Sequence record: NC_017972.1
DNA: 64,000 bases
Strand: one strand, 5' to 3'
Under the pieces are notes generated by a model. The model saw nothing but the letters and a program-made list of their open reading frames with translations, did no database searches and was not told the origin of the DNA. This document shows, in pieces, positions 23,948 through 45,839 of this stretch. The position numbers and the translations under genes are program-made. Position 1 is the stretch's first letter, and each line of letters begins with the position of its first letter.

Positions 23948-23960
23948 AATACTGTAAATA
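23948..23960 (+). promoter_or_regulatory. AAWACTGTAAATR motif copy 5
   Basis: AATACTGTAAATA in an AT-rich intergenic region. Confidence 0.6.
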
Positions 23961-24119
23961 TAAATAAAGCTCGATGCTCTCAACTAGACAAGGTTATATC
24001 CCCGATTGTAATGCGATACTAGGCTTAGCTGGCCGCTAGAAAATGCAAAGCAATTGGGTGCGCCTTATACTGATCACAATGGAGCTTTATCAAACCTTTG
24101 CCTAAACCCAAAGGGAACG

Positions 24120-29566: not shown

Positions 29567-30213
29567 AAGGTCTTTTTATTGCGCTGGAATCTCTGGAAGC
29601 TGCTGGCAAAGGAACTGCGACGGATTATGTGGGTGGCTGGGCGCGTCGGCGTGGCCTCGACATGGTATTTACTCGCGAACCGGGCGGCACTGAATTTGCT
29701 GAACCAATCCGGGCGCATATGCTGAGCTGGGAAGGTAAGGTGCCGCCAGCGTGCCAAGCGCTGCTGTCGTATGCGGCCCGCGTAGAGCACACGCAATCGC
29801 ATATCATCCCTAGCCTGAATCGCGGCGCACACGTTTTCACCGAACGTTATTATGCCAGCGCCCTCGCTTACCAGACGCAAACCTATGCAGAAACCCAAAA
29901 GGTTCATGATCTTGTTTCGCAATATCTGGTGAAACCGGACCTGACAATCCTGCTGGATATCAGCCCGGAATTGAGTCTAGAGCGGATGCAGAAATCTCGC
30001 GTAGAGCGCGGCATCGAGCTGGACGAGTTTGAAAAGAAACCAATTGAATATTTCCGGGGCGTGCGTGACGCCTACTATGCGCAGATTGACGATTCGTGGG
30101 CGATTGTTGACGCCTCGCAACCTCTGCCAGAAGTGGAGCGGCAAATTCTCGCAATCCTCGACAAAAAGCTGGGGTTAACAAATGAAGCTGTATCTAACCA
30201 CTGCGTCGGCTAA
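29563..30213 (+). CDS. tmk: Thymidylate kinase
   Basis: FIALESLEAAGKGT, TREPGGT, ERYYASALAYQ, PDLTILLD; GTG start. Confidence 0.92.
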   Translation: MKGLFIALESLEAAGKGTATDYVGGWARRRGLDMVFTREPGGTEFAEPIRAHMLSWEGKVPPACQALLSYAARVEHTQSHIIPSLNRGAHVFTERYYASALAYQTQTYAETQKVHDLVSQYLVKPDLTILLDISPELSLERMQKSRVERGIELDEFEKKPIEYFRGVRDAYYAQIDDSWAIVDASQPLPEVERQILAILDKKLGLTNEAVSNHCVG

Positions 30214-30607
30214 AAAGTATTTGAAAGGTGGGCAGATTGTCCGCCTCGAAAAGAATTATCCGTACATTCGCGACCTCGGTTCTCGCCTGCTGAGACTGCC
30301 GATAATCAAACGCGGAAATTTTGTGGACAAGCTTCCACAGAGTGACGACGCGCTGATCGCCTTTGCACAGCAACGGAAATTCGATCTGTACTACGGCTAC
30401 AAAATCTGTAAATTAAATGGAAGGGACAGCCTATTGGCGTCCCTTTTGTGCGTTGATAAGAGCGGCTGTGTGGTCGAAGACAAGTCCAGCCGCCTCGACA
30501 ACACGTCCTGCTACGTCGGCATTAAGGTGCCAGAAGCGGACATTAAATCGCGAACTTACGCAACAAAATTCAGTCGCGCGGACTATCTGCCAAAGGGTTA
30601 TCAATGA
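30182..30607 (+). CDS. Hypothetical protein with a tag-like N-terminus (MKLYLTTA)
   Basis: First member of the N-terminal motif array. Confidence 0.7.
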   Translation: MKLYLTTASAKKYLKGGQIVRLEKNYPYIRDLGSRLLRLPIIKRGNFVDKLPQSDDALIAFAQQRKFDLYYGYKICKLNGRDSLLASLLCVDKSGCVVEDKSSRLDNTSCYVGIKVPEADIKSRTYATKFSRADYLPKGYQ

Positions 30608-32289
30608 ACGTTCATATTGCTGTTGCGGCGGCATCCGCGCCCGGTAGTGCGGACGCATTTATCAAGCTTCTGGTCGCCATTTACAAGGCGCCCGAATACA
30701 ACTACGGCACCAACTTTTGCACCAAAATGCAGAAATGGCTGGAACAAGCGCAGCCCTTTATTGACCATTACAACATGAAGCGCGTATTCGCTAAAACGCT
30801 GAGCCTGTTGGTTGCCGGTGAAGACGTTGCTGACGAGAAATATTCGCTGATTGTTAACGGCTGTTTTGACACGCTGAAAGCCAAGAAAAAGTCGTTTGAT
30901 AAAGACTCCAGCCTGAGCAAACAGCAACTGCAATTCCTGACCGACGTGCGCCTTGCCCGCAACGGTTCGGAAGCGGCGACCAAGCGCCTGATGCAGCACG
31001 CTGGATACTTCAAAGATTCGCATATCTCGAAAATGTTCCTGCATGAAGACGAACACACCGAGACGACCACGCAAGATGCGTTGTATCAGAGGCTTGAAGA
31101 GCATGTGAAAAAGTACGGCAAGGTGAAAGGCAATGTCATGCCGGAAACCGTGCTGGAAGCGTGGCGAGAAAAAGCGAAGAAACTCGGCAACAACCTGACC
31201 GAGCATCAAGAATATCTGGACATGCGCCGCCAGCGTAAAGCCATTGCCGATAAAGCAATTGCCAACATCGTGCGGGCGTCGGGTGAACACATTGTCGATG
31301 TGGATGTAATCCGCAATCAAATGGGCAACGTGCAGTACGATATTCCTGAATGGTTCGTCGGCAAGATGGACGACAAAGGAAACTACTACACGACCGATGG
31401 TTTGCAACTGCTGAATAAACCAGTTGGTGCGGGTTCGATGAACAAGAACTACACGCCGGGTTCCACGGTTTATTACTGCCAGTACAAGGCCCCGTTTGCC
31501 CAATCGACCACGAACGTTTACACAATTGCAGCGCGTACCGAAGGCCGTGTGCAATCGTTCAACATCGTGCAAGACATGCTGCCTGACCTGCAAAAATATG
31601 TGCGGAAATGGCTTCCTGATTTGGCGAAAGGTCCGGGTTCGCTGCGTGGCGTTGCTGCCGCCGTGTGTGAAATCATTTATCAGACCAGTGCGCGTATCGG
31701 TTCGACCCGTGCGGCCACTGCTGGCGAAACCACTTACGGTATTTCCACGCTGCTGCGCAAGCATCTGAATTTCAATGATCAGCGCGTGATCATGAAATAC
31801 TTGGGCAAGAAGGCCGGTGCGCAAAAGCATGTGATCAAATTCAATGATCAACGGACCGAGATTCTGCATGGCGTTCTGGTGGAATTCCTGCACGAATTGA
31901 AACCGGCGAATCATGTGTTTACTTTCCGTGGCAAGCCGCTGTCGAACTCGCAGGTGAACGGCTATCTGCGCGACCTCGGATTCCCCGAAGGATTTACGAT
32001 TCACAAGTTCCGCAAATTGCGGGGTACGGCGATGGCTAAAGCGCTTATGGATAAATGCCCGTTCGGTGCCCGCGCACGCGAAGCCGACGTAAACAAATGG
32101 ATCGAAACTCAGTGCTTGAAAATCGGTAAAGAGCTGGGCCATATGAGCGGGGAAAACGTGACCGCAACTACGGCCATTGCAAACTACATCGACCCGTCTG
32201 TTTTCCTGCCGGTCTACGAGAAAACCAATACTCGCCCGAACAGCAAAATTCAGAAGGCCATTGACCTCGCCACGAAGAGTACAGAATAA
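30604..32289 (+). CDS. DNA topoisomerase IB-like protein with a long N-terminal extension (tag MNVHIAVA)
   Basis: SARIG, YGISTLLRKH, YLGKK, VNGYL, HKFRK, LGH and NYIDP carry the R-K-R-H-Y pentad. Confidence 0.82.
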   Translation: MNVHIAVAAASAPGSADAFIKLLVAIYKAPEYNYGTNFCTKMQKWLEQAQPFIDHYNMKRVFAKTLSLLVAGEDVADEKYSLIVNGCFDTLKAKKKSFDKDSSLSKQQLQFLTDVRLARNGSEAATKRLMQHAGYFKDSHISKMFLHEDEHTETTTQDALYQRLEEHVKKYGKVKGNVMPETVLEAWREKAKKLGNNLTEHQEYLDMRRQRKAIADKAIANIVRASGEHIVDVDVIRNQMGNVQYDIPEWFVGKMDDKGNYYTTDGLQLLNKPVGAGSMNKNYTPGSTVYYCQYKAPFAQSTTNVYTIAARTEGRVQSFNIVQDMLPDLQKYVRKWLPDLAKGPGSLRGVAAAVCEIIYQTSARIGSTRAATAGETTYGISTLLRKHLNFNDQRVIMKYLGKKAGAQKHVIKFNDQRTEILHGVLVEFLHELKPANHVFTFRGKPLSNSQVNGYLRDLGFPEGFTIHKFRKLRGTAMAKALMDKCPFGARAREADVNKWIETQCLKIGKELGHMSGENVTATTAIANYIDPSVFLPVYEKTNTRPNSKIQKAIDLATKSTE

Positions 32290-32290
32290 A

Positions 32291-32569
32291 ATGAAAATCA
32301 TGCTCGCTACTGCCGCCGAACCTGTTTACTCGGTTGATAAACTACCGAAAGGCTCCAAAGTTATCGGCTACGAAGTTTACCGCCAAGGCACTAAAAACCT
32401 GCTGGGCAAAGGCGCTGCCGGTACTGCGAAACAGGCAATTAAACGTATCGATTTTCATGCGAATACCGGCATGACGGTTGACCTTGCGATTATCGCAATG
32501 GACGGCGAACACAAAATCAGCTTAACAGAAGCGTACAAGCTGAAAGATACCGGTGCCGTAAAAGTTTAA
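32291..32569 (+). CDS. Small protein with tag MKIMLATA
   Basis: ATG at 32291, one base after the upstream stop. Confidence 0.7.
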   Translation: MKIMLATAAEPVYSVDKLPKGSKVIGYEVYRQGTKNLLGKGAAGTAKQAIKRIDFHANTGMTVDLAIIAMDGEHKISLTEAYKLKDTGAVKV

Positions 32570-32596
32570 TCAATTCGCCCCGAAGAGCAAAAGCAA

Positions 32597-32983
32597 ATGG
32601 ACATATACGAAAACGGCGTATGTATTGGTCATGCTGATGAACCGGGTGAACGCGGGCCTGCTGGTGTGGCCGGTATGCCGGGGGCAGATTGGAATGAGGG
32701 GAAGGGCGGCGACAGAGGCCCGTGCGGTCCTGACTGTCACGCGAAATGCAAATGTCGTAAACGCTACGATGTTCTGCTAATTAGCGGCGAAGAGTACGGA
32801 CGCATGATGGCCAAGAAAATGATCGCCGCCATGCAGGAACAAGGCACAGGAATTCACGGTCGGGATTTCGGTCCTGCCGGTCCGTTAGGGATGACTGCCG
32901 CAGATGCAAAACATCATTTGCCGTGGTACGTAGAGCATAATATGCGTGCGCAGCGGCGTGCGCAGAGGAATAAAAAGGTATGA
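32597..32983 (+). CDS. Small protein with short collagen-like G-X-Y stretches (no tag)
   Basis: GERGPAGVAGMPG, GDRGPCGP, GPAGPLG. Confidence 0.65.
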   Translation: MDIYENGVCIGHADEPGERGPAGVAGMPGADWNEGKGGDRGPCGPDCHAKCKCRKRYDVLLISGEEYGRMMAKKMIAAMQEQGTGIHGRDFGPAGPLGMTAADAKHHLPWYVEHNMRAQRRAQRNKKV

Positions 32984-33894
32984 AAATCCAACTGGCACTC
33001 GCCAAGGATCAAGGCTTTGCATTTCACGGCACTAGCTACCGAAATGCAGCCGCGATTATTGAAACCGACAAGCTGCAACTGTCGCAGGTTGCAGGCAAGG
33101 AAGCAGAAGCGCAATTCGCTAAGCATCCTTTCTTTTTGAGTGTGCGTCGCAACCGCCAACTGACTGCGACGAATTTTTATGATGTGACTATCGAATTCAA
33201 AGAGCAGGCGCTGCAATCGCGTATGCAACGGGAATCGGTGGATTACTGGGGCCACGTCGAAGGCAAAGGCAACAGCATCGAACAGGAAGACCGTTATTAC
33301 TACGCGAAACCTATTCTGAAAAACGCTGTTAAACTGATCCGTGCCTTGCATATCAACCTGAACAATTATGATCCGGCGCGTATCGGCTCCGCCATGCGTA
33401 AAATGATCGTGACTGCAAAGAAACTCGGCATTCAGGTTTATCTGTACCGCGACGAAAAAGCCTACAACCGCGTAGACAAGCGCAAGACTGTGCCTCTTTC
33501 CGAAATGGAATACGGTCCAAAAGCCGCGAACATTTTCCGCGAACGAACTGCCGAAGAGGCGGAGCGCGAAGCAGAAGATCAAATGTTCAAAGGTATGCGC
33601 TACAAGCGCGCCCAGTACCCGGAAATCAAGTTCGTTGTGGATATCCTGCACAGCGGTACGGCACCGGAAAACAAAGAAGCGAAATATCAGACCGAACGCT
33701 TTGGCTATCGCCTGTCCGGCCATGAACTTGCTTCGCAGCTGGGCAACATCCTGCATAATGCTTCCCATAGCCCGCACGGCAAAGAGAAACAGTGGGCTGC
33801 ACGCGTTCAAGAATGGATGCGCAAGAATGGGAAAAACGTGGAAGAAACCGCGTACCATATTCGCGAGATTATCCAGCAGAGGGATGGCCGATGA
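32980..33894 (+). CDS. ADP-ribosyltransferase-like protein, paralogue A (tag MKIQLALA)
   Basis: FHGTS, FFLSVRR, VDYW, EQEDR. Confidence 0.6.
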   Translation: MKIQLALAKDQGFAFHGTSYRNAAAIIETDKLQLSQVAGKEAEAQFAKHPFFLSVRRNRQLTATNFYDVTIEFKEQALQSRMQRESVDYWGHVEGKGNSIEQEDRYYYAKPILKNAVKLIRALHINLNNYDPARIGSAMRKMIVTAKKLGIQVYLYRDEKAYNRVDKRKTVPLSEMEYGPKAANIFRERTAEEAEREAEDQMFKGMRYKRAQYPEIKFVVDILHSGTAPENKEAKYQTERFGYRLSGHELASQLGNILHNASHSPHGKEKQWAARVQEWMRKNGKNVEETAYHIREIIQQRDGR

Positions 33895-34067
33895 TCAAGC
33901 CGATTCGTTTGAGTGACCTTAACAAGATTTACGAGAACGAAACGCCAGAGGAAAAGCAAAAGCGTCTGGAAGCAAATCAGGCGCGGCTTGATCGCTGGGT
34001 TAGCGAATGGAAAGCATTCAGGGAAAAACATCCTGACATTGCTGATCGAATGGTGTGCGCCGCATGA
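33891..34067 (+). CDS. Small hypothetical protein (58 aa, no tag)
   Basis: MIKPIRLSDLNKIYE...; ATGA overlaps at both ends. Confidence 0.65.
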   Translation: MIKPIRLSDLNKIYENETPEEKQKRLEANQARLDRWVSEWKAFREKHPDIADRMVCAA

Positions 34068-35011
34068 AAATTCAACTCGCTGTCGCAGGCTCTTCTGTCC
34101 TGTATCACATTACCGAAATGATCAACGCCGTAAGGATTCTGCAAGGGGATAGTTTCATACTGACCCCTACGGCATTGCGCAAGACGGAAATCGTCCACGG
34201 TGGCGGCAAACCTCATTACTTTATGTCGTTTGCTCGCACGCCGCATAACCTGTTCTTCAAAACGAACCAGTCCGGGCGCAACAAAGACTACGTGATTTTT
34301 GTGTGCGACGGGCAGAAACTCGCCTCCAGTTACAAAATCAAACCTGTAGATTTCCTGAGCAATCCAGAATCGGCTGGCGACATTGACGACGAATGGAAGG
34401 GCGGCGACGAAACCGAAGACCGCTTAATCACCACGAAGCACTCCATTCCGGCGATTCGCTATATCAAGGAAATTCACTTTTCCTCCGGTCATGAAGTCGG
34501 TATGACGCCAATGGTTCGCCAGCTGGCGCTGACTGCAAAGCTTCACGATATGAAGCTGTTCCGCTACGAAACTTTTGCCGATTTGATCAAGATGAATCGC
34601 CGAAAAGCTTTGCCTCTGGATATGCGCAAAGCAACGCCGCGCAGACGATTCGGCCAGAAAAAGCGCGATTTTGGCTTGGGGCCTTCTCGCGATTCGCAGC
34701 GGTTCGGCCTCAAAACGTGGTGGCGTGCGCTGAAAATGCCCGTTAAACCCGGCGATAAACAAGCGCAGTTTATGGGCAACACAAAGAATATGGATTCCTA
34801 TTCTTTCCGTGAAGACCTGTGGGAATCCATGTTCGGCGGTGAGGATGGCGGCAAATCCGAGTTCGGCCTAAACATTGCGCGTCGTCGCCTCGGCACCATG
34901 ATTGACACCGGGCGCGCTGATCCATACGGGCAAAAGCTGGTCGAATACATGAAACGCAAAAACATGCAGCCCGCAGAACTCTTCGATCAAATTCGGGATA
35001 GGTGGAAATAA
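34064..35011 (+). CDS. ADP-ribosyltransferase-like protein, paralogue B (tag MKIQLAVA)
   Basis: LYHIT, YFMSFAR, FVCDGQKL, PVDF, ETEDR. Confidence 0.6.
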   Translation: MKIQLAVAGSSVLYHITEMINAVRILQGDSFILTPTALRKTEIVHGGGKPHYFMSFARTPHNLFFKTNQSGRNKDYVIFVCDGQKLASSYKIKPVDFLSNPESAGDIDDEWKGGDETEDRLITTKHSIPAIRYIKEIHFSSGHEVGMTPMVRQLALTAKLHDMKLFRYETFADLIKMNRRKALPLDMRKATPRRRFGQKKRDFGLGPSRDSQRFGLKTWWRALKMPVKPGDKQAQFMGNTKNMDSYSFREDLWESMFGGEDGGKSEFGLNIARRRLGTMIDTGRADPYGQKLVEYMKRKNMQPAELFDQIRDRWK

Positions 35012-35400
35012 TGAGCAAAGATTCTAGCCGTTATGGCGTTGGTCAGGTTGTCTACATGCACCCGGCGGTCGATTCGCTGACCCCTGAGCAGGTTCAAAAA
35101 CACGGTATCATGGCAAAAGTTGTAGGCGTGAATTTCATGGCTACTGCTGTGTCCTATGAGCTGGCGCTGGATGTTGCAGCACCGGGCGCCGAGCCGCAGT
35201 TCTACGAGCAAATTCCTGTCGCCGCTGTGGATTCGTATTTCGTCGTTAGCGCTGCCGATCTTGCCAATCGCGGCGCCGATGAATATCAATCCTATGCCTC
35301 TTCGCGTACCGAACGCAGCGATAAAGAAATTCGCACCTTTGCTTCGCGGTTCCGCATGATTGAATCCGACTTGGCAGAAATGCGAGGCGGCGCACACTGA
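35011..35400 (+). CDS. Small hypothetical protein, possible SH3-like barrel (no tag)
   Basis: YGVGQVVY...AKVVGVNF...SYEL; TAATG coupling. Confidence 0.65.
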   Translation: MSKDSSRYGVGQVVYMHPAVDSLTPEQVQKHGIMAKVVGVNFMATAVSYELALDVAAPGAEPQFYEQIPVAAVDSYFVVSAADLANRGADEYQSYASSRTERSDKEIRTFASRFRMIESDLAEMRGGAH

Positions 35401-35759
35401 TGAAAATCCAGCTAGCGGTTGCGTCCACGGCTTTACCTTATGAGGAAGGGCGTTCGCATGATATTAAAATAGGGGATTCCACTATCTCCTACAGCAAAGG
35501 GTACGGCAATGACTACATAGAGTTGGGTAGTTTGCGCACGCCCGCCTCTAAACGTGGGAACGGTAGTGCGCGAAAAGCAATGGTGGAATTCCTGAAAAGA
35601 ACTGACGCCATGCAAATGGACGTGGAACTGCTAGCCTCCCCTTTGGACAAGAAAACCAAAATTGGAAAGCTTGTGGCGTTTTATCAATCTTTTGGATTTG
35701 AATTGACCGGTAGGCACAACATGGCCTACGAGCCTTATATGCGGAGGCCCCATAAGTGA
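35400..35759 (+). CDS. GNAT acetyltransferase-like protein (tag MKIQLAVA)
   Basis: SKRGNGSARKAM acetyl-CoA loop and LVAFYQSFGF. Confidence 0.75.
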   Translation: MKIQLAVASTALPYEEGRSHDIKIGDSTISYSKGYGNDYIELGSLRTPASKRGNGSARKAMVEFLKRTDAMQMDVELLASPLDKKTKIGKLVAFYQSFGFELTGRHNMAYEPYMRRPHK

Positions 35760-36208
35760 AAATCCAGCTGGCGGTGGCGACCGCAAAAGTTTATTACCAC
35801 GGCACGAAAAAGAAGTTTGAAAAGTTCTCTGAGTATCGACCGGCGTTCTTTTCACCTAGTTTGGCTTACGCGCAAGAGTATGGGCCTATCATCATGAAAG
35901 CCCATTTGGATATTCGCCATATTTTCGATACGCGCCACGACAAGCGTGCGGTCGAGATTTACAACGAGTATTTCATACCGTCCGGGCTTGCGCATGCGGA
36001 TGTTGAGCCTATCAAACTGGGCGAACCTGTCGATATGCTGCATGCGGATGAATTGTGGTCGTACTTGGCGGTCCCTGAATACCCGGCGCCGCACTACGAC
36101 GGCATTGCCGTTAGCGAACATGGTGTTAGCTCTTTGGGTGACAAATTCAAAGATGCAGATATCGCCTACGTTCCTCTGCATCCACAACAAATCCATTTGG
36201 TGAAATAA
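35756..36208 (+). CDS. ART-PolyVal-like ADP-ribosyltransferase (tag MKIQLAVA)
   Basis: YYHGT..KFEKF, AFFS..LAYAQEY, YDGI, YVPLHPQQI. Confidence 0.65.
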   Translation: MKIQLAVATAKVYYHGTKKKFEKFSEYRPAFFSPSLAYAQEYGPIIMKAHLDIRHIFDTRHDKRAVEIYNEYFIPSGLAHADVEPIKLGEPVDMLHADELWSYLAVPEYPAPHYDGIAVSEHGVSSLGDKFKDADIAYVPLHPQQIHLVK

Positions 36209-37124
36209 TGAAAATCCAGCTGGCTGTTGCTGGATCGTCCGTGCTCTATCATTTGATCTACATGGAGCACGCGATTACAGCGCTGAAAAACGACAAGTTC
36301 AAACTGGCCCCGGTTAATGAGGGCATCGAATCAGAGTTCGGTACTGCCCAGTATTTCCTGAGTCTGGCGCGTTCTAAGCATTCCGATTACTTCCTAAAAG
36401 AGGCTGGTGATACCCACGTCGTTTTCGTGCTCGACGGGCAGAAAATGAATGCGAATTACCAGATCAAGGCCGTCGATTACTGGCACAAGCAGGCATTCGT
36501 CGATGACGACGAAAAAGAAGATCGCCTGTTCGCAAACAAAATGTACATTCCGTGCATTCGCTACATCAAAGAAATCCACTTCATGAAAGAAAATCCGAAG
36601 TGGAAGGTTAACGACTCGCTAACGCTGGCACTGCTAGCCAAACGTGCTGGGATTCCGCTGTTCCAGTATTCCAGCATGAACGCTTTCCGCATGTTGGATA
36701 AACGCAAGACAATCAAACTTGAAGTTTCTGACAAAAAGAAACGCAAGTTCGGCACCAAAGTTTCCCAACCGTACACGACCGGCGAACTGGAGGCGTGGTA
36801 CGTTGCATCGCAAATTGTTTTTAAAGGCAGCGAAACGCATTACACGCAATACCTGAAAGGCGCCCGCACCAAGCAAGAACAAAGCAGCCGCGATATGATT
36901 GCCCGTCGTATCAAAACGATGATCAGCATGCACGACGTTGGCAGCCAGCCGGTGCGCGATTTCAACCGGCTGCTGGATGCTGCCAAGGAAGGGCCAGACT
37001 ACAATTCCTTGAGAAAATTAAACGTGTCAAACGTAGGCTGCGCGTCGATACCAAAGGCTTTTTGGATTATGTGCGCAAGCGCTGGATGACGCCCGAAGAA
37101 CGCGAACTACATGGACTAGAATAA
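36208..37124 (+). CDS. ADP-ribosyltransferase-like protein, paralogue C (tag MKIQLAVA), with an apparent 1-nt frameshift near 36991
   Basis: LYHL, YFLSLAR, FVLDGQK, VDYW, EKEDR. Frame 0 stops at 37089, but the -1 frame continues with paralogue-like sequence to a TAATG junction at 37124. Confidence 0.6.
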
Positions 37125-39007
37125 TGCGAATTCAACTCGCAGTAGCGGCGGTGCCTTTGAGTATCGCCCGCCCATACGTCAAAGGATGGAACCGGTTCGG
37201 TATTGGCGTGCAGGCCGTCCGCCGAACCATGCCGAAAGGAACCCGAGGCTATAACAAAGGGTATCGCCTGTATCTGCCGATCAAACCGGGAAAACGACCA
37301 AAAGTTGTGGTGCCGAAATTCATTGATCGAGCTATTTCTTCTGCTGGTTACAGAGTCGAGGATTACATTACCGGCATTGCGGTGGACATGGCCGGTAAGC
37401 GTCGAATAAAAATCGGCAAATTGCTCAAAGACGAAGAGCTGCGCAATCAGTTTGCAAACGACCCGCAGCGCGCTGCATTCAAAAACGATTATGTCTGTGT
37501 GATTTCCGCGCATCCTTACGATGTAATCGGTATGTCTACCGGTCGCCGCTGGGACGATACTTCCTGTATGAGATTGGCGCAGCCGGGTGTGCGCGGTGGC
37601 GCTTTCCAATCCACAGTCAAACACGACGTTGCCGAGGGCACGTTGGTTGCCTACGCGATTTCCCCGAACGATAAAAATATCAACAAACCGCATGGCCGTT
37701 TGTTGATTAAACCGTTCTACGATGAACACCGCAATATTCTGTTCCGCGTAGAAACCACGGTCTATGGTACGCCGGTTCCGGGCTTTGTCGAGACGGTGCA
37801 GCGCTGGCTGAAAAAGGTTAACAAAGACGCAGCGCAAGGCATTTACAAAATTGCGGATGGCCTTTACGACGATGGCGTCGGCGAAGCGTTTATCAACGTT
37901 GACGTAGATAAAAAGTCGGATGCAGAGTTGCTTGATTATTGGCGGAAATCCGACCACGCAGATCGCCGGATGCTGATGCGTTCTGATATTCGCTGGGCAA
38001 AACCTGCAATTCTTTTGACCATTGAGAATAATCAGGACGATCTAGACGGCTTGTCCTACGCGCTTGCGACCGTGTTGACCAGAAGCCATATTCTCTATGA
38101 TCAACCAACCTCCAAAAAGATTGCGAAAATCATAGACGAGGTTATGCCAGAAGACGTTGCACAACAGCTGATGTTGGAAATGCTGTCGCACGGTGGCGAA
38201 AAGGTGGTGAGATATTCCACCAAACTCAAGGCCGCAGCAGACACGTACTATGCGTATGATCCTAACAAGAAATTGCGACTTAGTGTGGCGGTGCAGTACG
38301 CCGCTTATGATCCGCGTTTCCTTGGCAACGTTGAAAGCCTTACTTCCGACGACGCACGCGGTATCTCTGGATTGGCACGGTCGTTTATTCGCGGCTCTTC
38401 CAAAGATACAAAAGAATTCCGCCGCTCCAAAATGGAAGGCTCTAAGCTTCTACGCAGGACGCTGGCTGTAATTGCCGCTGCGCTGATGAAAATTCCAAAG
38501 TCGCACAAAGACAAAGGCGAGCACATTGAGAAAATGGCGCGTTGGTTTAAAACCGACGAATTCTACGACGCTCAAGTGTGGAAAGTTCTACAGACTCGCG
38601 CCCTCGGTATGGTTAGCCGCAGCATCGACATAAGCAGCGGCAACCTCGCTGTCGGTTTGTGTGCTCTTGACGATTCGTGGCCGCGCCAGATTAACGAACT
38701 GGTCGAATCCACCGAGTACATCGAAGAAAGCCCCGAAGCGATGCAAAACGTTTGCAATTGCCGCAACACTGCCGCGCAAGGGCAATTGATCGTTAAGCTT
38801 CAAGCTGGTGGTTATATACGCGATCCCGGCTGGCTGCGCGAACATTCGTACATTATCGGCTTGTTGGAAACCATCGTCAAAGACGAAGATGGCGAATGGG
38901 ATGGCACCCGTATCCAGACAATGGCGCGCAATTCGCTGGATAAACTTGCCAAAGTCGCGCCAGCAAATGGAAGACATTTTCAACGAACTGAAAGACGCCG
39001 GATTTGA
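37124..39007 (+). CDS. Large paralogue 1 (tag MRIQLAVA; conserved HPYD-GMSTGR-SCM domain)
   Basis: Shares an N-terminal domain of about 270 aa with 39063 and 41797. Confidence 0.8.
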   Translation: MRIQLAVAAVPLSIARPYVKGWNRFGIGVQAVRRTMPKGTRGYNKGYRLYLPIKPGKRPKVVVPKFIDRAISSAGYRVEDYITGIAVDMAGKRRIKIGKLLKDEELRNQFANDPQRAAFKNDYVCVISAHPYDVIGMSTGRRWDDTSCMRLAQPGVRGGAFQSTVKHDVAEGTLVAYAISPNDKNINKPHGRLLIKPFYDEHRNILFRVETTVYGTPVPGFVETVQRWLKKVNKDAAQGIYKIADGLYDDGVGEAFINVDVDKKSDAELLDYWRKSDHADRRMLMRSDIRWAKPAILLTIENNQDDLDGLSYALATVLTRSHILYDQPTSKKIAKIIDEVMPEDVAQQLMLEMLSHGGEKVVRYSTKLKAAADTYYAYDPNKKLRLSVAVQYAAYDPRFLGNVESLTSDDARGISGLARSFIRGSSKDTKEFRRSKMEGSKLLRRTLAVIAAALMKIPKSHKDKGEHIEKMARWFKTDEFYDAQVWKVLQTRALGMVSRSIDISSGNLAVGLCALDDSWPRQINELVESTEYIEESPEAMQNVCNCRNTAAQGQLIVKLQAGGYIRDPGWLREHSYIIGLLETIVKDEDGEWDGTRIQTMARNSLDKLAKVAPANGRHFQRTERRRI

Positions 39008-39062
39008 TGACGAAGAGGACGACGAAAACGGCCTCTTCGATGATGAGGATTAAGGGGAACCT

Positions 39063-41726
39063 ATGAAAATTCAACTAGCCACCGCAGCCGTAGCCTTACG
39101 CACTGCAATTCGCTACAGCAAAAACTGGAATAAAAACTCGCCGACCGTGCGCCTGTTGCAGTCGATGATGCCCGATGTTCCCGGCCAGAAAAAAGGTTAT
39201 CGTTATTACATCGACCTGAAACGCGATAACAAGCACTATTCGATTCCGCCTGCTGTAAGAAGCGCGGTGAAAAATGCCGGTTTTGTTATCACTGATTACC
39301 TCGCCAAGAAATGCGTAAAGGCCTCCGACAAAGAGCAGAAAAACGTATTCAACATTGGCAAGGTTATCGCCAAAGACCCGCACGCCAAAGCCGCGTTCGA
39401 CAACGATCCGCAATTGCAGAACAGTAAAACCAGCGAAATCAAAATCGTTGTTTCCTGCCACCCATACGACATTATCGGTATGTCCACTGGCCGGGACTGG
39501 GATAAACAATCCTGTATGCGACTCGACGACGGATATCGAAACGTCGGTGACGCTGGCGCCTACCACAGACATGTAGAGCACGACGTGGCCGAGGGCACAT
39601 TGGTGGCGTATGCAATTCGCGCCTCCGATACCAATATTCAAAAGCCGCTGGGCCGTTGCCTGATTAAACCTTTCCTGAATTCGGACGGGTACGAAGAGGG
39701 TGGTGAACATCACATTTTATTCCGTCGCGAAACTGCTATTTACGGAAACGGCGTGCCGGGTTTTGGTCGCGCATTAAATCTGTTTTTGCATAAACTGAAT
39801 GCCAAGGTTCCGTCCGGGTATTATGAGCGTGTACAGAGTCTGTACGATGACGGCGTAGGCGATGACCATCACCACGACGCTGACAGAGCACAAAGCGACA
39901 AAATCGCCGTGAGTGATGTTGTAGAAGATAATCGTTTGATTATCCCATACATGGATCAGATATTTGAGGAAGATGCTTCGGTGCGAGAGGCGTTAGCGCC
40001 CCTGCGAATGAAAGGTCTTGAGCTGCACGATACGGAAGTTACACATCTTGCCGGAATGTTCCGAGAAGATGATGAAGTAAAAGACGAATTGGATTATCTG
40101 ATTCGCAGCGGTCAAGCCACGACTGCGATTTACAAGCTGGCAAAAGCGTTGGACCTTACCCATAAGAATCAGCCATCTAACTATCGCGATATGTCCCGCA
40201 ACGAGCTTGTCGGCCAAGCGACGCTGAAAGACGAAAAAGCGATGGTGGAAATCCTGAATCGTTTGAATAACGAAGAGACTTCCAAATCTGATGCGGATAT
40301 GATTTATACCAGCTGGTGCAAATCCCGCCTGCCTCTGCCGTCGGCTGATCTACTGCTGAAATATCCAAAGGTTACAGTGAAGCTGGCAAGTCTCGCTAAA
40401 GCCAGTATGAACCTGCGTGCCTTCTTTGATGATGGCGACTTTGACGAATTCGCTTTTGCTTTCCGTGACCTGAATGTCGATCCGGCTTCCTACGGCGATC
40501 ACCGCCCGGAACCGGAAGATTTGCTGAATATGATGTACGCGATTGGTCACTACGAGCTGGCGCTGTGCTGCATCTACGAAGAGTACAAATGGTTGGGCGT
40601 CGTGATTTACGACACGGTAAACCACGACTACGCCGACCGCTTCGACAACCGCAAATTGTACCGCGCATTCAGCAAATTGTCCGATTCCAATATGGACGAT
40701 TACATGGATCGTATACGTGAGAAAATCTTTGAACGCATTATGGCGGGCAGCCGCCTCCAGTTCAAAGACGCAAAACCAGACGTACTGGCGCAGTATCTGA
40801 ACGATCCTGATTTGCTGCGTAACAAGGATCGGTGGGAACCTACGCACATTCATCGTTTGATTGATTTCAGCCTGCCACTAGCCATGATGCTGGACATTCC
40901 GAACGACAGTCTACTGCCTCGCGTTTTGCCTGAGTATTACAAGGCCTTGGTTGCCTACGAAGGCGAGCCGCTGGAAGTCCAATCGGTAAGCATGGAATGG
41001 GCAATGCAGCTGCTAGTTTACGCTAACAAGCTGACCAAAGAAAAACCGGATATTGCCAGCAAGATTGCCGAGTTTGAACCGCTTGATACCGCCACCCTGA
41101 TTGAGAAATATCGGGTACGTAATGCGAAGACATACAACTACGAAAAAACCCTTGCTGCTTTCTGCCTAAGTCTGAAAATCGGCCAAGCTGTAGACGGAGA
41201 ACGCCTTAGCGTGATGGACGATCCGGTCTATATGGCAACGGATTTCGATACTGCGGTTATTACCGCACCTCCGCATAAACTGGCGGAAAACATCCACACA
41301 ATTCTCAACAATCTCATTGAGCGTTCGGATATTCGTCAAATTGTGCGGATGCTGGAAACCGTATCGGAGTCCCTGAATTACCAGCCGGATTTCACGTCGC
41401 CCGACGACTACGCCAACGATAAAATGGAAGAAGAAGTCGTAGACGATTTCGACTACCATATTGTTCGTGAGCAATACGAAGAGGAAGGCCGCGATAGACT
41501 GGAAACTGAACTTGCGGCATTCAGGAAAGTTGCCGAGGCCCACGAAACCCTGCGCGAATTCGTTGGTTACGATGATTCCGAAGAAACATTGGATGTAGAT
41601 TTGCCAAACGTTTCTAAGGAAGATTTGGATCAGGCAGGCGGCGATATTTCCATGCTCATTCAAACCGTCAATGGCAACCAATACAGCATTGATGACTCGA
41701 TTATCGAAGCCGAAGGTATGCTGTAA
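39063..41726 (+). CDS. Large paralogue 2 (tag MKIQLATA)
   Basis: Same N-terminal domain, unrelated helical C-terminus. Confidence 0.85.
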   Translation: MKIQLATAAVALRTAIRYSKNWNKNSPTVRLLQSMMPDVPGQKKGYRYYIDLKRDNKHYSIPPAVRSAVKNAGFVITDYLAKKCVKASDKEQKNVFNIGKVIAKDPHAKAAFDNDPQLQNSKTSEIKIVVSCHPYDIIGMSTGRDWDKQSCMRLDDGYRNVGDAGAYHRHVEHDVAEGTLVAYAIRASDTNIQKPLGRCLIKPFLNSDGYEEGGEHHILFRRETAIYGNGVPGFGRALNLFLHKLNAKVPSGYYERVQSLYDDGVGDDHHHDADRAQSDKIAVSDVVEDNRLIIPYMDQIFEEDASVREALAPLRMKGLELHDTEVTHLAGMFREDDEVKDELDYLIRSGQATTAIYKLAKALDLTHKNQPSNYRDMSRNELVGQATLKDEKAMVEILNRLNNEETSKSDADMIYTSWCKSRLPLPSADLLLKYPKVTVKLASLAKASMNLRAFFDDGDFDEFAFAFRDLNVDPASYGDHRPEPEDLLNMMYAIGHYELALCCIYEEYKWLGVVIYDTVNHDYADRFDNRKLYRAFSKLSDSNMDDYMDRIREKIFERIMAGSRLQFKDAKPDVLAQYLNDPDLLRNKDRWEPTHIHRLIDFSLPLAMMLDIPNDSLLPRVLPEYYKALVAYEGEPLEVQSVSMEWAMQLLVYANKLTKEKPDIASKIAEFEPLDTATLIEKYRVRNAKTYNYEKTLAAFCLSLKIGQAVDGERLSVMDDPVYMATDFDTAVITAPPHKLAENIHTILNNLIERSDIRQIVRMLETVSESLNYQPDFTSPDDYANDKMEEEVVDDFDYHIVREQYEEEGRDRLETELAAFRKVAEAHETLREFVGYDDSEETLDVDLPNVSKEDLDQAGGDISMLIQTVNGNQYSIDDSIIEAEGML

Positions 41727-41748
41727 AACAATAATTTGATAGTAAACC

Positions 41749-41778
41749 AAGGGGATTTGGCGACAAGTCCCCTTTCTT
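41749..41778 (+). terminator. Intrinsic terminator
   Basis: AAGGGGATTTG-gcga-CAAGTCCCCTT followed by TCTTT. Confidence 0.75.
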
Positions 41779-41796
41779 TACATTAGGGACGCACAA

Positions 41797-44496
41797 ATGA
41801 AAATTGCGCTCGATTTTATGGGCACCGCAGCCGTTTCTATGCGTAGCGCGTTGAAGTACCGCCGCAATTGGAACAAGGAAAGCCCAACCGTAAAGCTTTT
41901 GCGCACACTGATGCCAAAAGGCTCAAAAGGTTTTCGTGTTTATTCCCCTATCGGCGCAGGTGCCCACGTTAACCATAACGTTCCCCGTGTTCCGGTCGCT
42001 GTGCGTTTAGCCGTACAGCGCGCAGGTTTCCGCATTACCGATTACCTTGCAAAGAAGTGCGTTAAACGTTCCGACAAAGAGCAGAAAAACGTATTCAACA
42101 TTGGCAAGGTTATCGCCAAAGACCCGGTGGCGAAGGCAGCATTCGACAATGACCCGCAGCTGCAAAACAGTTCGACTTCGGAATTTACGCTGGTTGTTTC
42201 GTGCCACCCATACGACATTATCGGTATGTCTACCGGTCGTGATTGGGATAACACTAGCTGTATGCGGTTAAAAGACGACCGCAAAGGCTATAGCGACGGC
42301 TTTAACTCGCGTTATCTTAATCACGATATCTCTGAGGGCACATTGGTTGCGTATGCAATTCGCTCCAATGACCAGAATATTACTGCACCACTGGGCCGGT
42401 GCCTGCTCAAGCCTTTCCTACGCACCGATGACGACGGCAAACAGCTGGTTATGTATCGTAGGGAAACCAAGATTTACGGCAACCCTGTTCCCGGTATGCC
42501 GGAAGCGTTAAGTGTATTTCTTCGCCGCCTGAATGCTGGCGTTCCGACCGGCACGTATTACATGAATTCCCTTCTGTATAACGACGGCGTGGCCGACGTG
42601 CATGAGCACGACGAAGAAAAAGAAGGCAGCAGTAAAATCGATTGGCTGCACGCCAACGAATATGAGATTTTCCGCGACCGTCCGCAAATGTTCCCAGCAT
42701 ACGTGGAATGGATGGTCAAAAACATTAAAGCTGGCGAGGCCCCGGCCAGCAGCGCGGAAACGATGATCGTCACCTTTGCCGAAAACGTTCCGGCCCGCTA
42801 CGTCAAGCAAGCGGCACGCATGATTGATGATCGCGATTTGCTGATTGCGTTTGCTGACCATATGGTGCTTTCGTCCAGTGGCTCTGACGCGAAAACCTAT
42901 AGCAAATTCTGTGCGTCCAAAACTTTCCGCAAACGCTTGGCAGCTGTTGCCGACGAAGCCTATATGCCGGAAAGCTACGCTGTCCTGTCGCACCTTTCCG
43001 CGAAGTATGCACATAAGTTCTTTGAAGAAGAGAAAAGCCGTGGGGCACTAGACGACCACCGCGATTTGGTTAATCTGGCAATGAATACCATTTATGGTTA
43101 CAACAGCCTGACCAAAACCGACATTGAATCGCTGCCGATGCTGCATTCTCTTGTTTATCACTTTGCCAATTATGTGCGCGCCGCGTCCGTTTATGGCATG
43201 ACTGATTATCAGGAAAACGCGCACAAATACCTGTCGATTCTGGCCGAGCCGCAGCCGCTGCCAATCGAAGCTTATGTGTCTTTGCTGGATTACCTCCGAG
43301 ACGATAAAGCAAACGCGCCTATCCTGTTTGCGATGCTCATGGAAGCGATCAAAAACGACAAAGCAAATCAAATTGATTTGTGCCTGACTAGCGGCTTCGA
43401 CACTAAGCTTATGGCGTCGTGCTTGTACGAACGTCGTATGCGCCGCGCCTTGCTGAATCAGCGGAAAAACCTGAGTGCAAAAGGCGCAGAAATGCTGGCC
43501 GATGGCGTTGCGCAGGTTTATACGGATAGCGACGAAGACGAAAACCACAACGCGACCAGCGCGGCCCGCGAACTGACTGCCTACATTCAGAAAAATACGT
43601 TCGATGCTGTGTCGGCAGAAAACGCCCGCACCTTGCAATACAGCGCGCCAGAACTTATTCCGTATCTGTTTGCATCCGGTGTGCAGATCGACCGTGAAAA
43701 CGTCCTGACTGTGTTGGGCAATCAAATGTTTGCGAGGGCTGCTAGAAACATGCCGCGCAACGAGTCGAACAAAAACATCCTGAAAATCGCCGATACCTTT
43801 GTGGGTATTATTTCACCAAACACGGATTTCCAACGCAGAAGGAAAGATCGTCCAGAACCGAGTGACGAATTCCCAGCCGTGGTGGACCCGGAGGTTTTGG
43901 AGCTGATTCGTAAATCGCTGAACGATTTGCCCGCCTACACTTACGACCTAGACAAATACCCGCAGTTGTACAGCACGCAATTCTACAAGGAAGAGCGCCC
44001 GAACCTTTACACTCTGTACACGTCGGGCAAGCTGCAATCTGTGCTAAAACATATGGATTCGGAAGAGTCCGTAGCACTGATGCGTGCGATTGCTAGCGAT
44101 CTTTCTGGTTTATCGCCAGTGCTCGCAACCATGCGTAACGATGATCGAATGCTGGCCGATTCCTACGCCATGACGCAGCTGATGGGCCTTATGCGTTCGG
44201 CTAGTAAATCCGAGGCGATTGATGAATCCGCAAAAACGGTGCAATCCATTGTAAACGCTGTGCGTAATCTGGAAGCGATGGTGCGTGACGTATTCCCACC
44301 AGTTGGCGCGCATATCGACCAATGGCGCAAAGTTGTTCCACAGCTGGCTGATGCGGAATATCCGTTTGCAGATATCGCCGTAAAAGACATGCTGGAAGGC
44401 GTGCAATCGTTGAAGAAACAGACACGGATTTTTGAATTGCTCGATTCCGAGCTGGCGCAATACTACCCGGACGATTGGCCGAAGGTGACTGCATGA
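41797..44496 (+). CDS. Large paralogue 3 (variant tag MKIALDFMGTAAV)
   Basis: Same N-terminal domain, unrelated helical C-terminus. Confidence 0.85.
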   Translation: MKIALDFMGTAAVSMRSALKYRRNWNKESPTVKLLRTLMPKGSKGFRVYSPIGAGAHVNHNVPRVPVAVRLAVQRAGFRITDYLAKKCVKRSDKEQKNVFNIGKVIAKDPVAKAAFDNDPQLQNSSTSEFTLVVSCHPYDIIGMSTGRDWDNTSCMRLKDDRKGYSDGFNSRYLNHDISEGTLVAYAIRSNDQNITAPLGRCLLKPFLRTDDDGKQLVMYRRETKIYGNPVPGMPEALSVFLRRLNAGVPTGTYYMNSLLYNDGVADVHEHDEEKEGSSKIDWLHANEYEIFRDRPQMFPAYVEWMVKNIKAGEAPASSAETMIVTFAENVPARYVKQAARMIDDRDLLIAFADHMVLSSSGSDAKTYSKFCASKTFRKRLAAVADEAYMPESYAVLSHLSAKYAHKFFEEEKSRGALDDHRDLVNLAMNTIYGYNSLTKTDIESLPMLHSLVYHFANYVRAASVYGMTDYQENAHKYLSILAEPQPLPIEAYVSLLDYLRDDKANAPILFAMLMEAIKNDKANQIDLCLTSGFDTKLMASCLYERRMRRALLNQRKNLSAKGAEMLADGVAQVYTDSDEDENHNATSAARELTAYIQKNTFDAVSAENARTLQYSAPELIPYLFASGVQIDRENVLTVLGNQMFARAARNMPRNESNKNILKIADTFVGIISPNTDFQRRRKDRPEPSDEFPAVVDPEVLELIRKSLNDLPAYTYDLDKYPQLYSTQFYKEERPNLYTLYTSGKLQSVLKHMDSEESVALMRAIASDLSGLSPVLATMRNDDRMLADSYAMTQLMGLMRSASKSEAIDESAKTVQSIVNAVRNLEAMVRDVFPPVGAHIDQWRKVVPQLADAEYPFADIAVKDMLEGVQSLKKQTRIFELLDSELAQYYPDDWPKVTA

Positions 44497-44921
44497 AAAT
44501 TCAATTAGCTATTGCAACCGCTAGCGACGACATGAATGCGCGGGTTAGTACCGACGTGCGGGCAGTAATTGCCAAGTCGTACAGCTCGCTATTTTCCAAT
44601 GTATTTTATCAGGTGCTGGATATTCCCGACCGCAGCAAATCGGATATCCGTCTGGTAAAAGAAATGGAAGACGACTACATTCCTGTCGTGGTGACTGTCG
44701 AAGATCAAGACCATAACAAGGTCACGTTTGTTTTCGCGGCTCACCGGATGCAGCCAATGTTGGGTAACGCAAACCCAACTAGAGGCTGGCTGTTGCACGA
44801 AAATAAAGTCGATGAATTCACGCTGGAATCGCGAGTAATCAAGGTGCGCGGCATAGCGTTTGCAATTGCCGCAATGGTTGCCCGGCGTGCCTCCCGCTTT
44901 ATCGATTTTGGCAATAACTGA
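44493..44921 (+). CDS. Hypothetical protein (tag MKIQLAIA)
   Basis: ATGA overlap with the upstream stop. Confidence 0.75.
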   Translation: MKIQLAIATASDDMNARVSTDVRAVIAKSYSSLFSNVFYQVLDIPDRSKSDIRLVKEMEDDYIPVVVTVEDQDHNKVTFVFAAHRMQPMLGNANPTRGWLLHENKVDEFTLESRVIKVRGIAFAIAAMVARRASRFIDFGNN

Positions 44922-45145
44922 TGAATATATTGCTCACCGTAGCCAAGTCCGGTTCTGCTGAGCGTTGGGACGCGTTGCCCTCTTCTGCTGAAAGATTTGA
45001 TAAGGCAAAAGAGGGCAGGGCGCTCAAAGCTAGTGGGAAAAAGAAATCGAAAAAGAAGCGCACACGTTCGGGCATAATTGACGCACCTACAACAGGTACG
45101 GAAATGCGCCAGACGGACGTTAGCTCAAGGGTAGGATTCCCCTAA
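44921..45145 (+). CDS. Small basic protein (tag MNILLTVA)
   Basis: TGATG coupling; Lys-rich. Confidence 0.65.
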   Translation: MNILLTVAKSGSAERWDALPSSAERFDKAKEGRALKASGKKKSKKKRTRSGIIDAPTTGTEMRQTDVSSRVGFP

Positions 45146-45402
45146 TGAAACTGACAATCAAAGGTCGCGCTCGCCAAGACGACACCACGGAAAACCCCAA
45201 GCATACTGGGGTTCGTGCTGCCGATTGGGAAGACGACGACAAAATGATCAAGAACATGCCGCCCGAAAAGAAGAAATCTTTGCTGCGAAATCAGCAAGAT
45301 ATTCCGAACAAAGGCGCGACCATGCCGCACGACTACATTGAGAAAATGCACGTCTCTAAATCGAACTGGCTTAGCCGGTTAGAGCGAGGGCGTGAACGAT
45401 GA
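45145..45402 (+). CDS. Small hypothetical protein (85 aa)
   Basis: TAATG coupling. Confidence 0.65.
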   Translation: MKLTIKGRARQDDTTENPKHTGVRAADWEDDDKMIKNMPPEKKKSLLRNQQDIPNKGATMPHDYIEKMHVSKSNWLSRLERGRER

Positions 45403-45839
45403 AAATCATGCTTGCTGTTGCGTGCGGCCTGTGCAACGTCGAGATTCCAGAGGACGCGTTTTCTTACGTCGAACCGACTAAAGCTAAGCGCGTAAAAGGT
45501 ATCAGTGAGGACGCAGTAAAAAGCCTGCTGGACAACGAGCTGGCGCGTGCGTCTGATGCCACTTCAAAGCAGCAACACGCTGACCACAAAAAGGACGGCG
45601 CGCTGCAAAAGAAAGTGAAGACGGCACAAGATGCAAAGATGAAAAAGCAGCAAAGCTTGCGCGCTATGCAGTCACAGCTGGTTGCCCTCAACGGCAAGCG
45701 CCCAACTGATCCGAAAAAGATTCAGAATTGGACTAAACGCCGCCGCGCTTTAGCCGAAAAGATCACAGAGAAAAGAAACTCTATTCGCCTTTCCGATTCC
45801 CGTGTCGCTGGCATGAGAAAGGAAGTCCGTGAAAACTAA
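45399..45839 (+). CDS. Basic coiled-coil protein (tag MKIMLAVA)
   Basis: ATGA overlap; K/R-rich helical composition. Confidence 0.7.
   Translation: MKIMLAVACGLCNVEIPEDAFSYVEPTKAKRVKGISEDAVKSLLDNELARASDATSKQQHADHKKDGALQKKVKTAQDAKMKKQQSLRAMQSQLVALNGKRPTDPKKIQNWTKRRRALAEKITEKRNSIRLSDSRVAGMRKEVREN

Follow-up and report, generated by a model that had tools for sequence, protein, structure and literature searches.

Why do fourteen phage genes whose products are for the most part unrelated begin with almost the same eight amino acids? The question is raised by a 64 kb stretch of DNA (64,000 nucleotides of NC_017972.1, called the window below), which corresponds to positions 124001–188000 of the record of Pseudomonas phage Lu11, so that a record position is the window position plus 124000. 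Lu11 is a jumbo myovirus of Pseudomonas putida with a genome of 280,538 bp, and the 16 kb region with the shared starts is 100% identical to it (JQ768459 / NC_017972). Within this region 14 genes among gp202–gp219 (gp202, 203, 204, 206, 208, 210–217 and 219) start with M-[KRN]-[ILV]-x-[LI]-[AT]-x-A. In a preliminary description of the window, made from its letters only, this start had been taken as a T4-like capsid label with a recognition and cleavage of its own, sitting on an arsenal of injected effectors. We regard it as quite probable that the octapeptide is an N-terminal propeptide which marks proteins for the Lu11 prohead and is then removed by the head maturation protease gp072. The protease and the tagged genes of the block are listed here, with an arrow at the putative cleavage position and ART standing for ADP-ribosyltransferase.

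Lu11 record 42570–43379: gp072, head maturation protease
30182–30607, plus strand: gp202, 141 aa, pI 9.6, leader MKLYLTTA↓S
30604–32289, plus strand: gp203, 561 aa, type IB DNA topoisomerase by Pfam, leader MNVHIAVA↓A
32291–32569, plus strand: gp204, 92 aa, basic, leader MKIMLATA↓A
32980–33894, plus strand: gp206, 304 aa, predicted DarT/Tpt1-like ART-fold family, leader MKIQLALA↓K
34064–35011, plus strand: gp208, 315 aa, same predicted ART-fold family as gp206 and gp212, leader MKIQLAVA↓G
35400–35759, plus strand: gp210, 119 aa, possible small GNAT, leader MKIQLAVA↓S
35756–36208, plus strand: gp211, 150 aa, weak ART-PolyVal match, start codon GTG, leader MKIQLAVA↓T
36208–37089, plus strand: gp212, 293 aa, DarT/Tpt1-like ART domain in the structure model, leader MKIQLAVA↓G
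37124–39007, plus strand: gp213, 627 aa, leader MRIQLAVA↓A, then a conserved N-terminal domain of about 270 aa (AVPLSIARPYVKGW...CHPYD..GMS)
39063–41726, plus strand: gp214, 887 aa, N-domain family of gp213, leader MKIQLATA↓A
41797–44496, plus strand: gp215, 899 aa, N-domain family of gp213, variant leader MKIALDFMGTA↓A
44493–44921, plus strand: gp216, 142 aa, leader MKIQLAIA↓T
44921–45145, plus strand: gp217, 74 aa, very basic (pI 10.5), leader MNILLTVA↓K
45399–45839, plus strand: gp219, 146 aa, basic (pI 10.1), probably helical, leader MKIMLAVA↓C

All 14 starts, which the preliminary description had given with their coordinates, are also the RefSeq CDS starts of Lu11. When the regular expression M[KRN][ILV].[LI][ATD].[AM] was run over all ATG, GTG and TTG starts in open reading frames (ORFs) of 40 aa or more, on either strand of the 64 kb, 14 matches were obtained, all of them genes of the block. 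With a loose DNA pattern for the tag peptide 12 matches were found in the window against 1.3 expected from shuffles; none of 100 shuffles reached this number and every one of the matches is the start of a block gene. Residues 5–8 alone, as [LI][AT]xA, occur at 16 gene starts where about 0.22 would be expected among 391 genes (Poisson P ~1e-24), and each of the 16 lies in the block or beside the head protease. The third codon positions vary freely, with ATC, ATT and ATA for Ile, CAA and CAG for Gln, CTG, CTC, CTA, CTT and TTA for Leu and all four codons each for Ala and Val, and the 25 nt 5' of the tagged starts show no similarity among the genes. It is therefore the peptide and not the DNA or RNA that is conserved, as had been claimed before, and a conserved promoter or ribosome-binding site as the cause of the shared start could be rejected because the upstream DNA is unrelated.

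An all-versus-all BLAST without the tag groups gp213, gp214 and gp215 into one paralogue family and gp206, gp208 and gp212 into another (gp206 and gp212 being distant paralogues with an E-value of 1.5e-11), while the remaining eight tagged block proteins are singletons, so that the block holds about ten families. That the proteins share only some eight residues, as had been stated earlier, is thus correct for the singletons and wrong for the two families, whose similarity extends beyond the tag. A similar correction applies to the distribution of the tag, which had been seen only in the block: this is true within the window and does not hold genome-wide. A DNA pattern search over the whole Lu11 record together with an ORF analysis of record positions 30001–188000 revealed tagged starts also at gp068 (MKVYLAIA), gp074 (MFISIAWA) and gp078 (MIISLAAA), and at these three only, which brings the total to at least 17 tagged genes in about 13 sequence families. 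The three additional genes belong to the head-morphogenesis module, where they flank the protease gp072 in the vicinity of the major capsid protein gp065. Two of them, gp074 and gp078, have an acidic, scaffold-like character, and gp078 contains a KMPT-N domain (Pfam). Most of the tagged cargo is basic (pI 9.4–10.5), as is also the case for the internal proteins of T4.

The tag is linked to the head not only by these neighbours, as its residues 5–8, h-A-x-A, are a motif that recurs inside head proteins. In the 158 kb of Lu11 that were scanned for it, [LIVFM]A[VTLI]A[STAG] is found as an internal motif at 23 places, compared to 6.3 expected from residue shuffles. Eight sites (FALA↓T, VAVA↓S, IAVA↓T, LAVA↓A, VATA↓S, LATA↓A, VATA↓S and VAVA↓S) are found in gp067, one in the major capsid protein gp065 (Q-V-A-T-A↓S-S, after residue 71 of 364 or 19.5%, a predicted propeptide boundary), one each in gp066, gp074 and gp109, and a further candidate in the portal protein:

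22101–22115, plus strand: candidate protease site L-A-T-A↓A at residues 54–58 of the portal gp191 (gene 21942–23924), from the internal-motif scan

The cargo of the block is free of internal sites except for one in gp216. From its distribution over scaffold, capsid protein and portal the motif looks like the recognition site of a prohead protease. The predicted cut in gp065, which would remove 19.5% of the protein, agrees with the capsid protein of phage PaBG, which drops about 20% of its mass on maturation in a virion with several multiply cleaved proteins (PMC7412058). The PaBG capsid protein contains APSA↓R at its residue 72, closely followed by EEAVAA (residues 74–79). The gene of gp067 (Lu11 record 39347–41251) is annotated as 'ATPase', yet its product has a scaffold-like composition and a poly-D/E tract of about 70 residues.

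The protease that would read this motif shows no match to any Pfam family, Peptidase_S77 included, and none in a PDB sequence search, so that only the fold search was informative. We collected 110 homologues of gp072 from metagenomes, and in 39 sequences His136 and Ser190, which are 54 residues apart, are invariant. Its AlphaFold (AF2) model (pLDDT 80.9) resembles the gp21/assemblin fold, as the top 15 Foldseek matches in the PDB are exclusively T4 gp21 (5jbl, probability 0.96, TM 0.50) and herpesvirus assemblins, and from the sites described above gp072 seems to favour small residues over Glu, at P1 as well as at P3. A tag-like leader is also found at the start of the protease homologues, where it runs up to a conserved F-S-x-G block (MKKELSLS↓FSVG, MKHLSTS↓FSLG), the equivalent position in Lu11 gp072 being …GELALG↓FTLG. 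This parallels T4 gp21, which possibly has a CTS-like propeptide of its own (PMC9026906; CTS, capsid-targeting sequence). All members of the gp072 family carry an invariant CCCH zinc-ribbon-like insert, C-x2-C…C-x-H, just after the catalytic Ser. We know of no such insert in gp21 or the assemblins. Some of the homologues have an additional N-terminal domain of about 60–130 residues.

The strongest comparative argument comes from the N-terminal domain of about 270 residues shared by gp213, gp214 and gp215, for which 1922 cluster representatives were obtained and the best 150 of these were surveyed for their leaders. In the gp214 family the short leader ends at a fixed boundary, just before a conserved A-[VL]-x-[LP]-S…Y-x-K-x-W block, and has a modal length of 8–9 residues. 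Among the best 150 the leader is of the E-type in 50, of the A-type (small-x-A) in 46 and of the S-type (small-x-S) in 21 sequences, with 5 further S-type leaders recognized by eye. The 11-residue leader of gp215 ends in G-T-A, and other long-leader relatives likewise end in G-[TL]-A. E-type leaders such as MKLQQLLE↓ and MRFKEIIAE↓ resemble the CTS of T4. One of the E-type homologues of gp214 is ORF132 of phage RsoM2USA with the leader MKTFKQFLNTLME, followed after the boundary by a body that starts with ALPLS... (MKTFKQFLNTLME↓ALPLSTARDYSKNW), and this phage encodes Portal_T4, Peptidase_S77 and Gp23. As its protease is of the T4-type Peptidase_S77, the leader of ORF132 fits the L/I-x-E specificity of gp21, and the protein is one of ten abundant virion bands identified by LC–MS/MS (PMC8504454). 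Thus the same cargo domain carries a leader suited to the protease of its own phage, which argues for the Lu11 octapeptide being CTS-like and processed by a protease. The gp214-type domain is also found in 4–6 copies inside two giant proteins, P0200 (1817 aa) and P0225 (1844 aa), and hence doubles as a repeat unit of polyvalent-like proteins.

Closer relatives carry the same label system with sequences of their own, as seen in HRDY3 and Yoloswag. HRDY3, the closest phage, has a syntenic block with thirteen tagged starts (MEMMLALA, MELQLALA, MELLIALA, MKTEIAIA, MNFELAVA and the like); its homologues of gp068, gp074 and gp078 are tagged as well, and its scaffold and capsid protein have internal sites as in Lu11. 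The counterpart of gp067 in HRDY3 (L017 10230–12205) is divided into two parts, of which the second begins with MATA↓S, at a site. In Erwinia phage Yoloswag the leaders are MEIVISLS, MEILISLS, MEKVVSLS and MKITLSLS, and many S-x-S motifs are present in scaffold and capsid protein. The tag across these relatives can therefore be written as M-x3-h-[AS]-h-[AS], with positions 2–4 being uniform per phage and different between phages; Glu replaces Lys at position 2 in both HRDY3 and Yoloswag. All 23 full-length orthologues of the topoisomerase gp203 from metagenomes are tagged with the same leader type. In three fusions (P0010, P0013 and P0018) a tagged GNAT-like protein of about 125 aa is joined to the topoisomerase, and a tag-like motif h-x-A-A-[AS] is kept at the junction (…NVSIAAS↓PGSADAL), as expected for a cleavage site. 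These fusions look like small polyproteins, standing between separate tagged genes and polyvalent proteins. The close homologues of gp212 are all tagged, and the homologue most distant from it begins with another leader, MDFLNQLE…. In PaBG the genes of the topoisomerase gp84 (MHTSLSA↓V) and of gp83 (MLIKINLLEAVAA↓K; a leader of 12–13 residues ending in A-V-A-A) are located directly upstream of those for scaffold and capsid protein, and gp83 is one of 14 virion bands (PMC7412058), so that both add indirect support to the reading as a virion label. Another PaBG protein, gp191 (L018 4631–5629), has 332 aa, is Lys/Ala-rich and histone H1-like, carries no N-terminal tag and was seen in multiple virion bands (PMC7412058), making it a candidate for a DNA-condensing internal protein.

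Taken as a propeptide of head-internal proteins, the octapeptide may be divided in two functional parts, as described for the T4 CTS, in which the N-terminal part targets and the C-terminal part is processed, with residues 4 and 7 governing targeting and residues 8 and 10 processing (PMC9026906). By analogy, residues 5–8 of the Lu11 tag (h-A-x-A, with small P3 and P1) would be the processing site. Residues 2–4 (K-I-Q) and the fixed distance from Met1 would form the candidate targeting determinant that docks the cargo on the assembling core, since they are conserved among the cargo and absent from the internal scaffold sites. The same motif would lead to the cutting of gp067 into small pieces, the stripping of a capsid propeptide of about 71 residues and the trimming of the portal, and cleavage by gp072 would free the cargo within the head. 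The freed cargo would be packaged together with the DNA and would probably exit with it at infection. Its predicted members are a type IB topoisomerase, three DarT/Tpt1-like ART-folds, an ART-PolyVal-like protein, possibly a GNAT-like protein, the three large N-domain proteins and small basic proteins. The motif shared with head proteins, the tagged genes flanking the protease, the predicted fold of gp072, the swapped leaders and the homologues present in virions all speak for a T4-like capsid label with different recognition and cleavage, and in this respect the preliminary description fits well. Cleavage of the type A↓X, targeting, ejection and the effector roles of the Lu11 cargo are inferred beyond this, as is the proposed arsenal of injected effectors.

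Three other explanations of the shared start were considered. The tag could be nothing else than a site for the prohead protease, and the proteins could arrive in the head by other means, or be core accessories that are degraded or expelled and not delivered as effectors; they might equally be assembly factors or become activated by clipping. The motif is clearly common to the tag and the scaffold sites, and the acidic, scaffold-like gp074 and gp078 from the head module would suit such a role, but a mere cleavage site would need neither the exact length of eight residues nor the conserved positions 2–4, and the scaffold sites do without K-I-Q. Moreover the cargo, having no internal sites apart from the one in gp216, would survive intact, a topoisomerase and ART folds have no obvious role in assembly, and the RsoM2USA homologue persists in mature virions (PMC8504454), so that we consider this explanation unlikely.

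Very unlikely in our opinion is a signal for a different fate, such as export or membrane insertion, an N-terminal degron of the ClpXP-type or import into a phage compartment. The tag is indeed hydrophobic and in Lu11 begins with Met-basic-hydrophobic, and its A-x-A resembles the rule of signal peptidase I, which likewise has small residues at P1 and P3, but with eight residues and no hydrophobic core after them the tag falls well short of the length of a Sec or lipoprotein signal, and nothing in any of these fates corresponds to its connection with scaffold, capsid protein, portal and protease. We therefore rejected a Sec or lipoprotein signal or lipobox, including the one suggested by MKIMLAVAC of gp219, as the folded domain follows directly after a leader of only 8 residues, and also a ClpX N-motif, since Glu at position 2 in HRDY3 and Yoloswag is unlike a basic degron. 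Hardly any credence can be given to the idea that the shared start is a nucleic-acid feature, either an enhancer of translation initiation or a handle for cassette recombination, with the peptide being functionless. An AAA second codon and A/T-rich starts can favour translation initiation, and with genes as densely arranged as these translational coupling is possible, but synonymous sites are free, the upstream DNA is unrelated, the peptide motif recurs inside head proteins and at fusion junctions and the relatives keep the peptide pattern with other residues.

Several points weigh against the propeptide reading itself. Cleavage after Ala or Ser is something that we infer purely from the sharing of the motif, and the best Foldseek E-value for gp072 is only 0.025, which is weak although the list of matches is coherent. 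In a covariation test the tag flavour and the internal scaffold sites agree in Lu11, but the tags of HRDY3 are mostly L-A-L-A and its scaffold sites mostly A-T-A or A-V-A, so that the covariation is loose. The Yoloswag scaffold sequence F-A-S-E-S fits S-x-S only with a shift of one residue and could also represent x-E↓ sites. Among the 14 abundant virion bands of PaBG there is no clear tagged enzyme except for gp83, and its leader is atypical. (The bands gp261 and gp263 are encoded by genes in the tail module and do not bear on the label question.) Finally, two hits of the internal-motif scan, …ALA↓SDR in gp197 (26421–27227) and gp181 (10605–11819), were rejected as prohead protease sites, being better explained by the autocleavage known from tail-fibre chaperones of the Peptidase_S74 type: in gp197 the Peptidase_S74 intramolecular-chaperone domain begins exactly at the Ser of this sequence (E 1e-13), and in gp181, for which no Pfam match was found, it is located near the C-terminus.

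As to the identity of the cargo, the folds proposed from the letters alone turned out differently well founded. The type IB topoisomerase gp203 is confirmed by Pfam (Topoisom_I, E 1.7e-12, 47.6 bits with a gathering cut-off of 23.7). The gp206/208/212 family has no Pfam match, even over 21 homologues, and its assignment comes from the AF2 model of gp212 (pLDDT 76.4), for which the top 7 Foldseek matches in the PDB are DarT and yeast Tpt1 (E 3e-4 to 2.5e-3, probability 1.00). H15, E102 and E104 are invariant in the family alignment. The model thus supports gp206, gp208 and gp212 as predicted DarT/Tpt1-like ADP-ribosyltransferase folds, a statement on the fold only. In this model residues 1–8 have a pLDDT below 50 (disordered) and the fold begins at about residue 11, so that the tag lies outside of it. 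The ART claim is weaker for gp211, which merely resembles ART-PolyVal (PF18760, E 1.6e-4, 22.9 bits, under the cut-off of 31.2 bits). A GNAT-like identity of gp210 is weakly supported by weak but consistent matches in tagged HRDY3 proteins, whose homology to gp210 is assumed. For gp202 no family match was found, the other cargo proteins not named here likewise belong to no recognisable family, and PHROGs gave no useful match for 12 of the 14 cargo proteins of the block.

The closest known system is that of the T-even phages, whose internal proteins are highly diverse and conserved only in the CTS (PMC3012670, citing Repoila 1994; PMC9026906). Like the T4 CTS of IPI, IPII, IPIII and Alt, which is processed by gp21, the Lu11 leader is a short N-terminal propeptide on otherwise unrelated and often basic proteins, and it ends in a protease motif that is also present in scaffold and major capsid protein. 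It differs in having Ala (Ser in relatives) and not Glu at P1, with h-A-x-A in place of L/I-x-E, and in its length of 8 instead of 10–19 residues; moreover gp072, unlike T4 gp21, lacks a Pfam Peptidase_S77 match and has the CCCH zinc-ribbon insert, and the tagged genes of Lu11, at least 17, are more numerous and include many predicted enzymes acting on DNA or nucleic acids. In jumbo phages of the phiKZ group many head proteins are processed at S/A-X-E, and the propeptides are heterogeneous, tens to more than 100 residues long and cut after Glu (PMC9026906). Lu11 has in common with phiKZ, 201phi2-1 and SPN3US that all are jumbo myoviruses in which a gp21-like protease acts, or in Lu11 would act, on head-internal proteins, with paralogue families and a small P3, and it differs from them by its uniform octapeptide with a small residue at P1.

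Herpesvirus assemblins, to which gp072 is similar in its predicted fold, cut an Ala–Ser bond that has a hydrophobic residue on its upstream side, the maturation consensus being (V/L/I)-x-A↓S. The apparent preference of gp072 for small P1 and P3 residues is like that of these sites and unlike that of the Glu-specific proteases of T4 (gp21) and phiKZ. They cut only themselves and the scaffold, and we know of no set of N-terminally tagged cargo enzymes in herpesviruses. The polyvalent proteins of phages (Iyer et al. 2017) reportedly combine ART, GNAT, protease and nucleic-acid enzymes that are delivered within the virion. The weak ART-PolyVal match of gp211, KMPT-N in gp078, the giants with multiple gp214-type domains and the fusion of a GNAT-like protein to the topoisomerase are reminiscent of them, whereas Lu11 encodes its modules in individual genes and labels every one of them, instead of joining them in one giant polyprotein. 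In phage P1 the packaging of the Dar proteins relies on specific protein–protein hierarchies and is not known to depend on a common octapeptide. We found no published description of the label of the Lu11 group, neither by title and abstract in nine papers mentioning Lu11 nor in the full text of the PaBG and Dickeya papers, the latter of which is also without proteomics. While T-even internal proteins sharing only the CTS and S/A-X-E processing in the phiKZ group were already known, the motif, the protease branch, the uniform octapeptide, the larger and enzyme-rich tagged set and the swapping of leader flavours on homologous cargo across lineages appear to be new.

It is tempting to go one step further and to see in such short leaders a general code by which head-internal proteins are addressed in distant lineages of tailed phages, an idea to which we give slightly less than even chances. 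If true, this code would have at least three flavours (x-E↓, small-x-A↓ and small-x-S↓), each matched to the gp21/assemblin-fold protease of its lineage, and the sequence of an uncultured phage would by itself reveal which proteins are packaged and ejected. Lu11-like phages would then load type IB topoisomerases and DarT-like ADP-ribosyltransferases as DNA-directed enzymes, which would act on the capsid DNA or on the chromosome of the host during the very first seconds of an infection, and through the protease branch that cuts after Ala or Ser the phage proteases would be connected with the specificity of the herpesvirus assemblins. Head-internal proteins are the first to act in infection (anti-restriction, host takeover) and are hard to identify without proteomics, so that a lineage-specific N-terminal label would allow the prediction of packaged proteins from genomes and metagenomes. 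Here it would suggest that a type IB topoisomerase and DarT-like ADP-ribosyltransferases are packaged. A shift of the prohead protease specificity from Glu to small residues would also bear on the evolution of phage and herpesvirus proteases. As the T4 CTS has served to load foreign proteins into capsids, the tag might become a compact handle of 8 residues for doing so in jumbo phages.

Regarding its setting, the block gp202–gp219 is located on the plus strand 3' of the genes for the large terminase (gp188) and the portal (gp191) and of a middle/late promoter given in the annotation, and it ends directly before a strand switch at a dihydrofolate reductase gene. The following features accompany the tagged genes.

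23952–23967, plus strand: putative middle/late promoter from the record annotation, 3' of the portal gene
32597–32983, plus strand: gp205, untagged, within the block, with a short collagen-like Gly-X-Y stretch
33891–34067: gp207, untagged, within the block
35011–35400: gp209, untagged, within the block
41749–41774, plus strand: terminator-like hairpin with an 11-bp stem and a T-rich tail, between gp214 and gp215
45145–45402: gp218, untagged, within the block
45860–46333: gp220, untagged, listed with the block, pI 11.5

As the promoter at 23952–23967 is the last one annotated ahead of the block, gp192–gp220 are probably a single late transcription unit, in which stop and start codons often overlap, and no excess of sigma-70-like sequences was found within the block. 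On its coding strand the block has no other strong element resembling a terminator than the hairpin, which may serve in transcription attenuation or mRNA stabilisation. The Gly-X-Y run of gp205 matches Pfam Collagen (E 8e-4), and the start of the syntenic gene in HRDY3 (L007 9741–9959) resembles that of gp205.

Two further observations concern other parts of the window. The protein gp173 (4726–5262), annotated as hypothetical, matches in its C-terminal half Tad2-like (Thoeris anti-defence 2; PF11195, E 1.2e-20) and has one internal L-A-I-A↓A motif near residue 53. In the tail and baseplate region an ORF of 74 aa (58131–58355) contains two motifs of the protease type, LEQIATA↓S and AETLATA↓S, and ends in a Cys-rich C-terminal stretch, which may indicate a head protein or be a coincidence.

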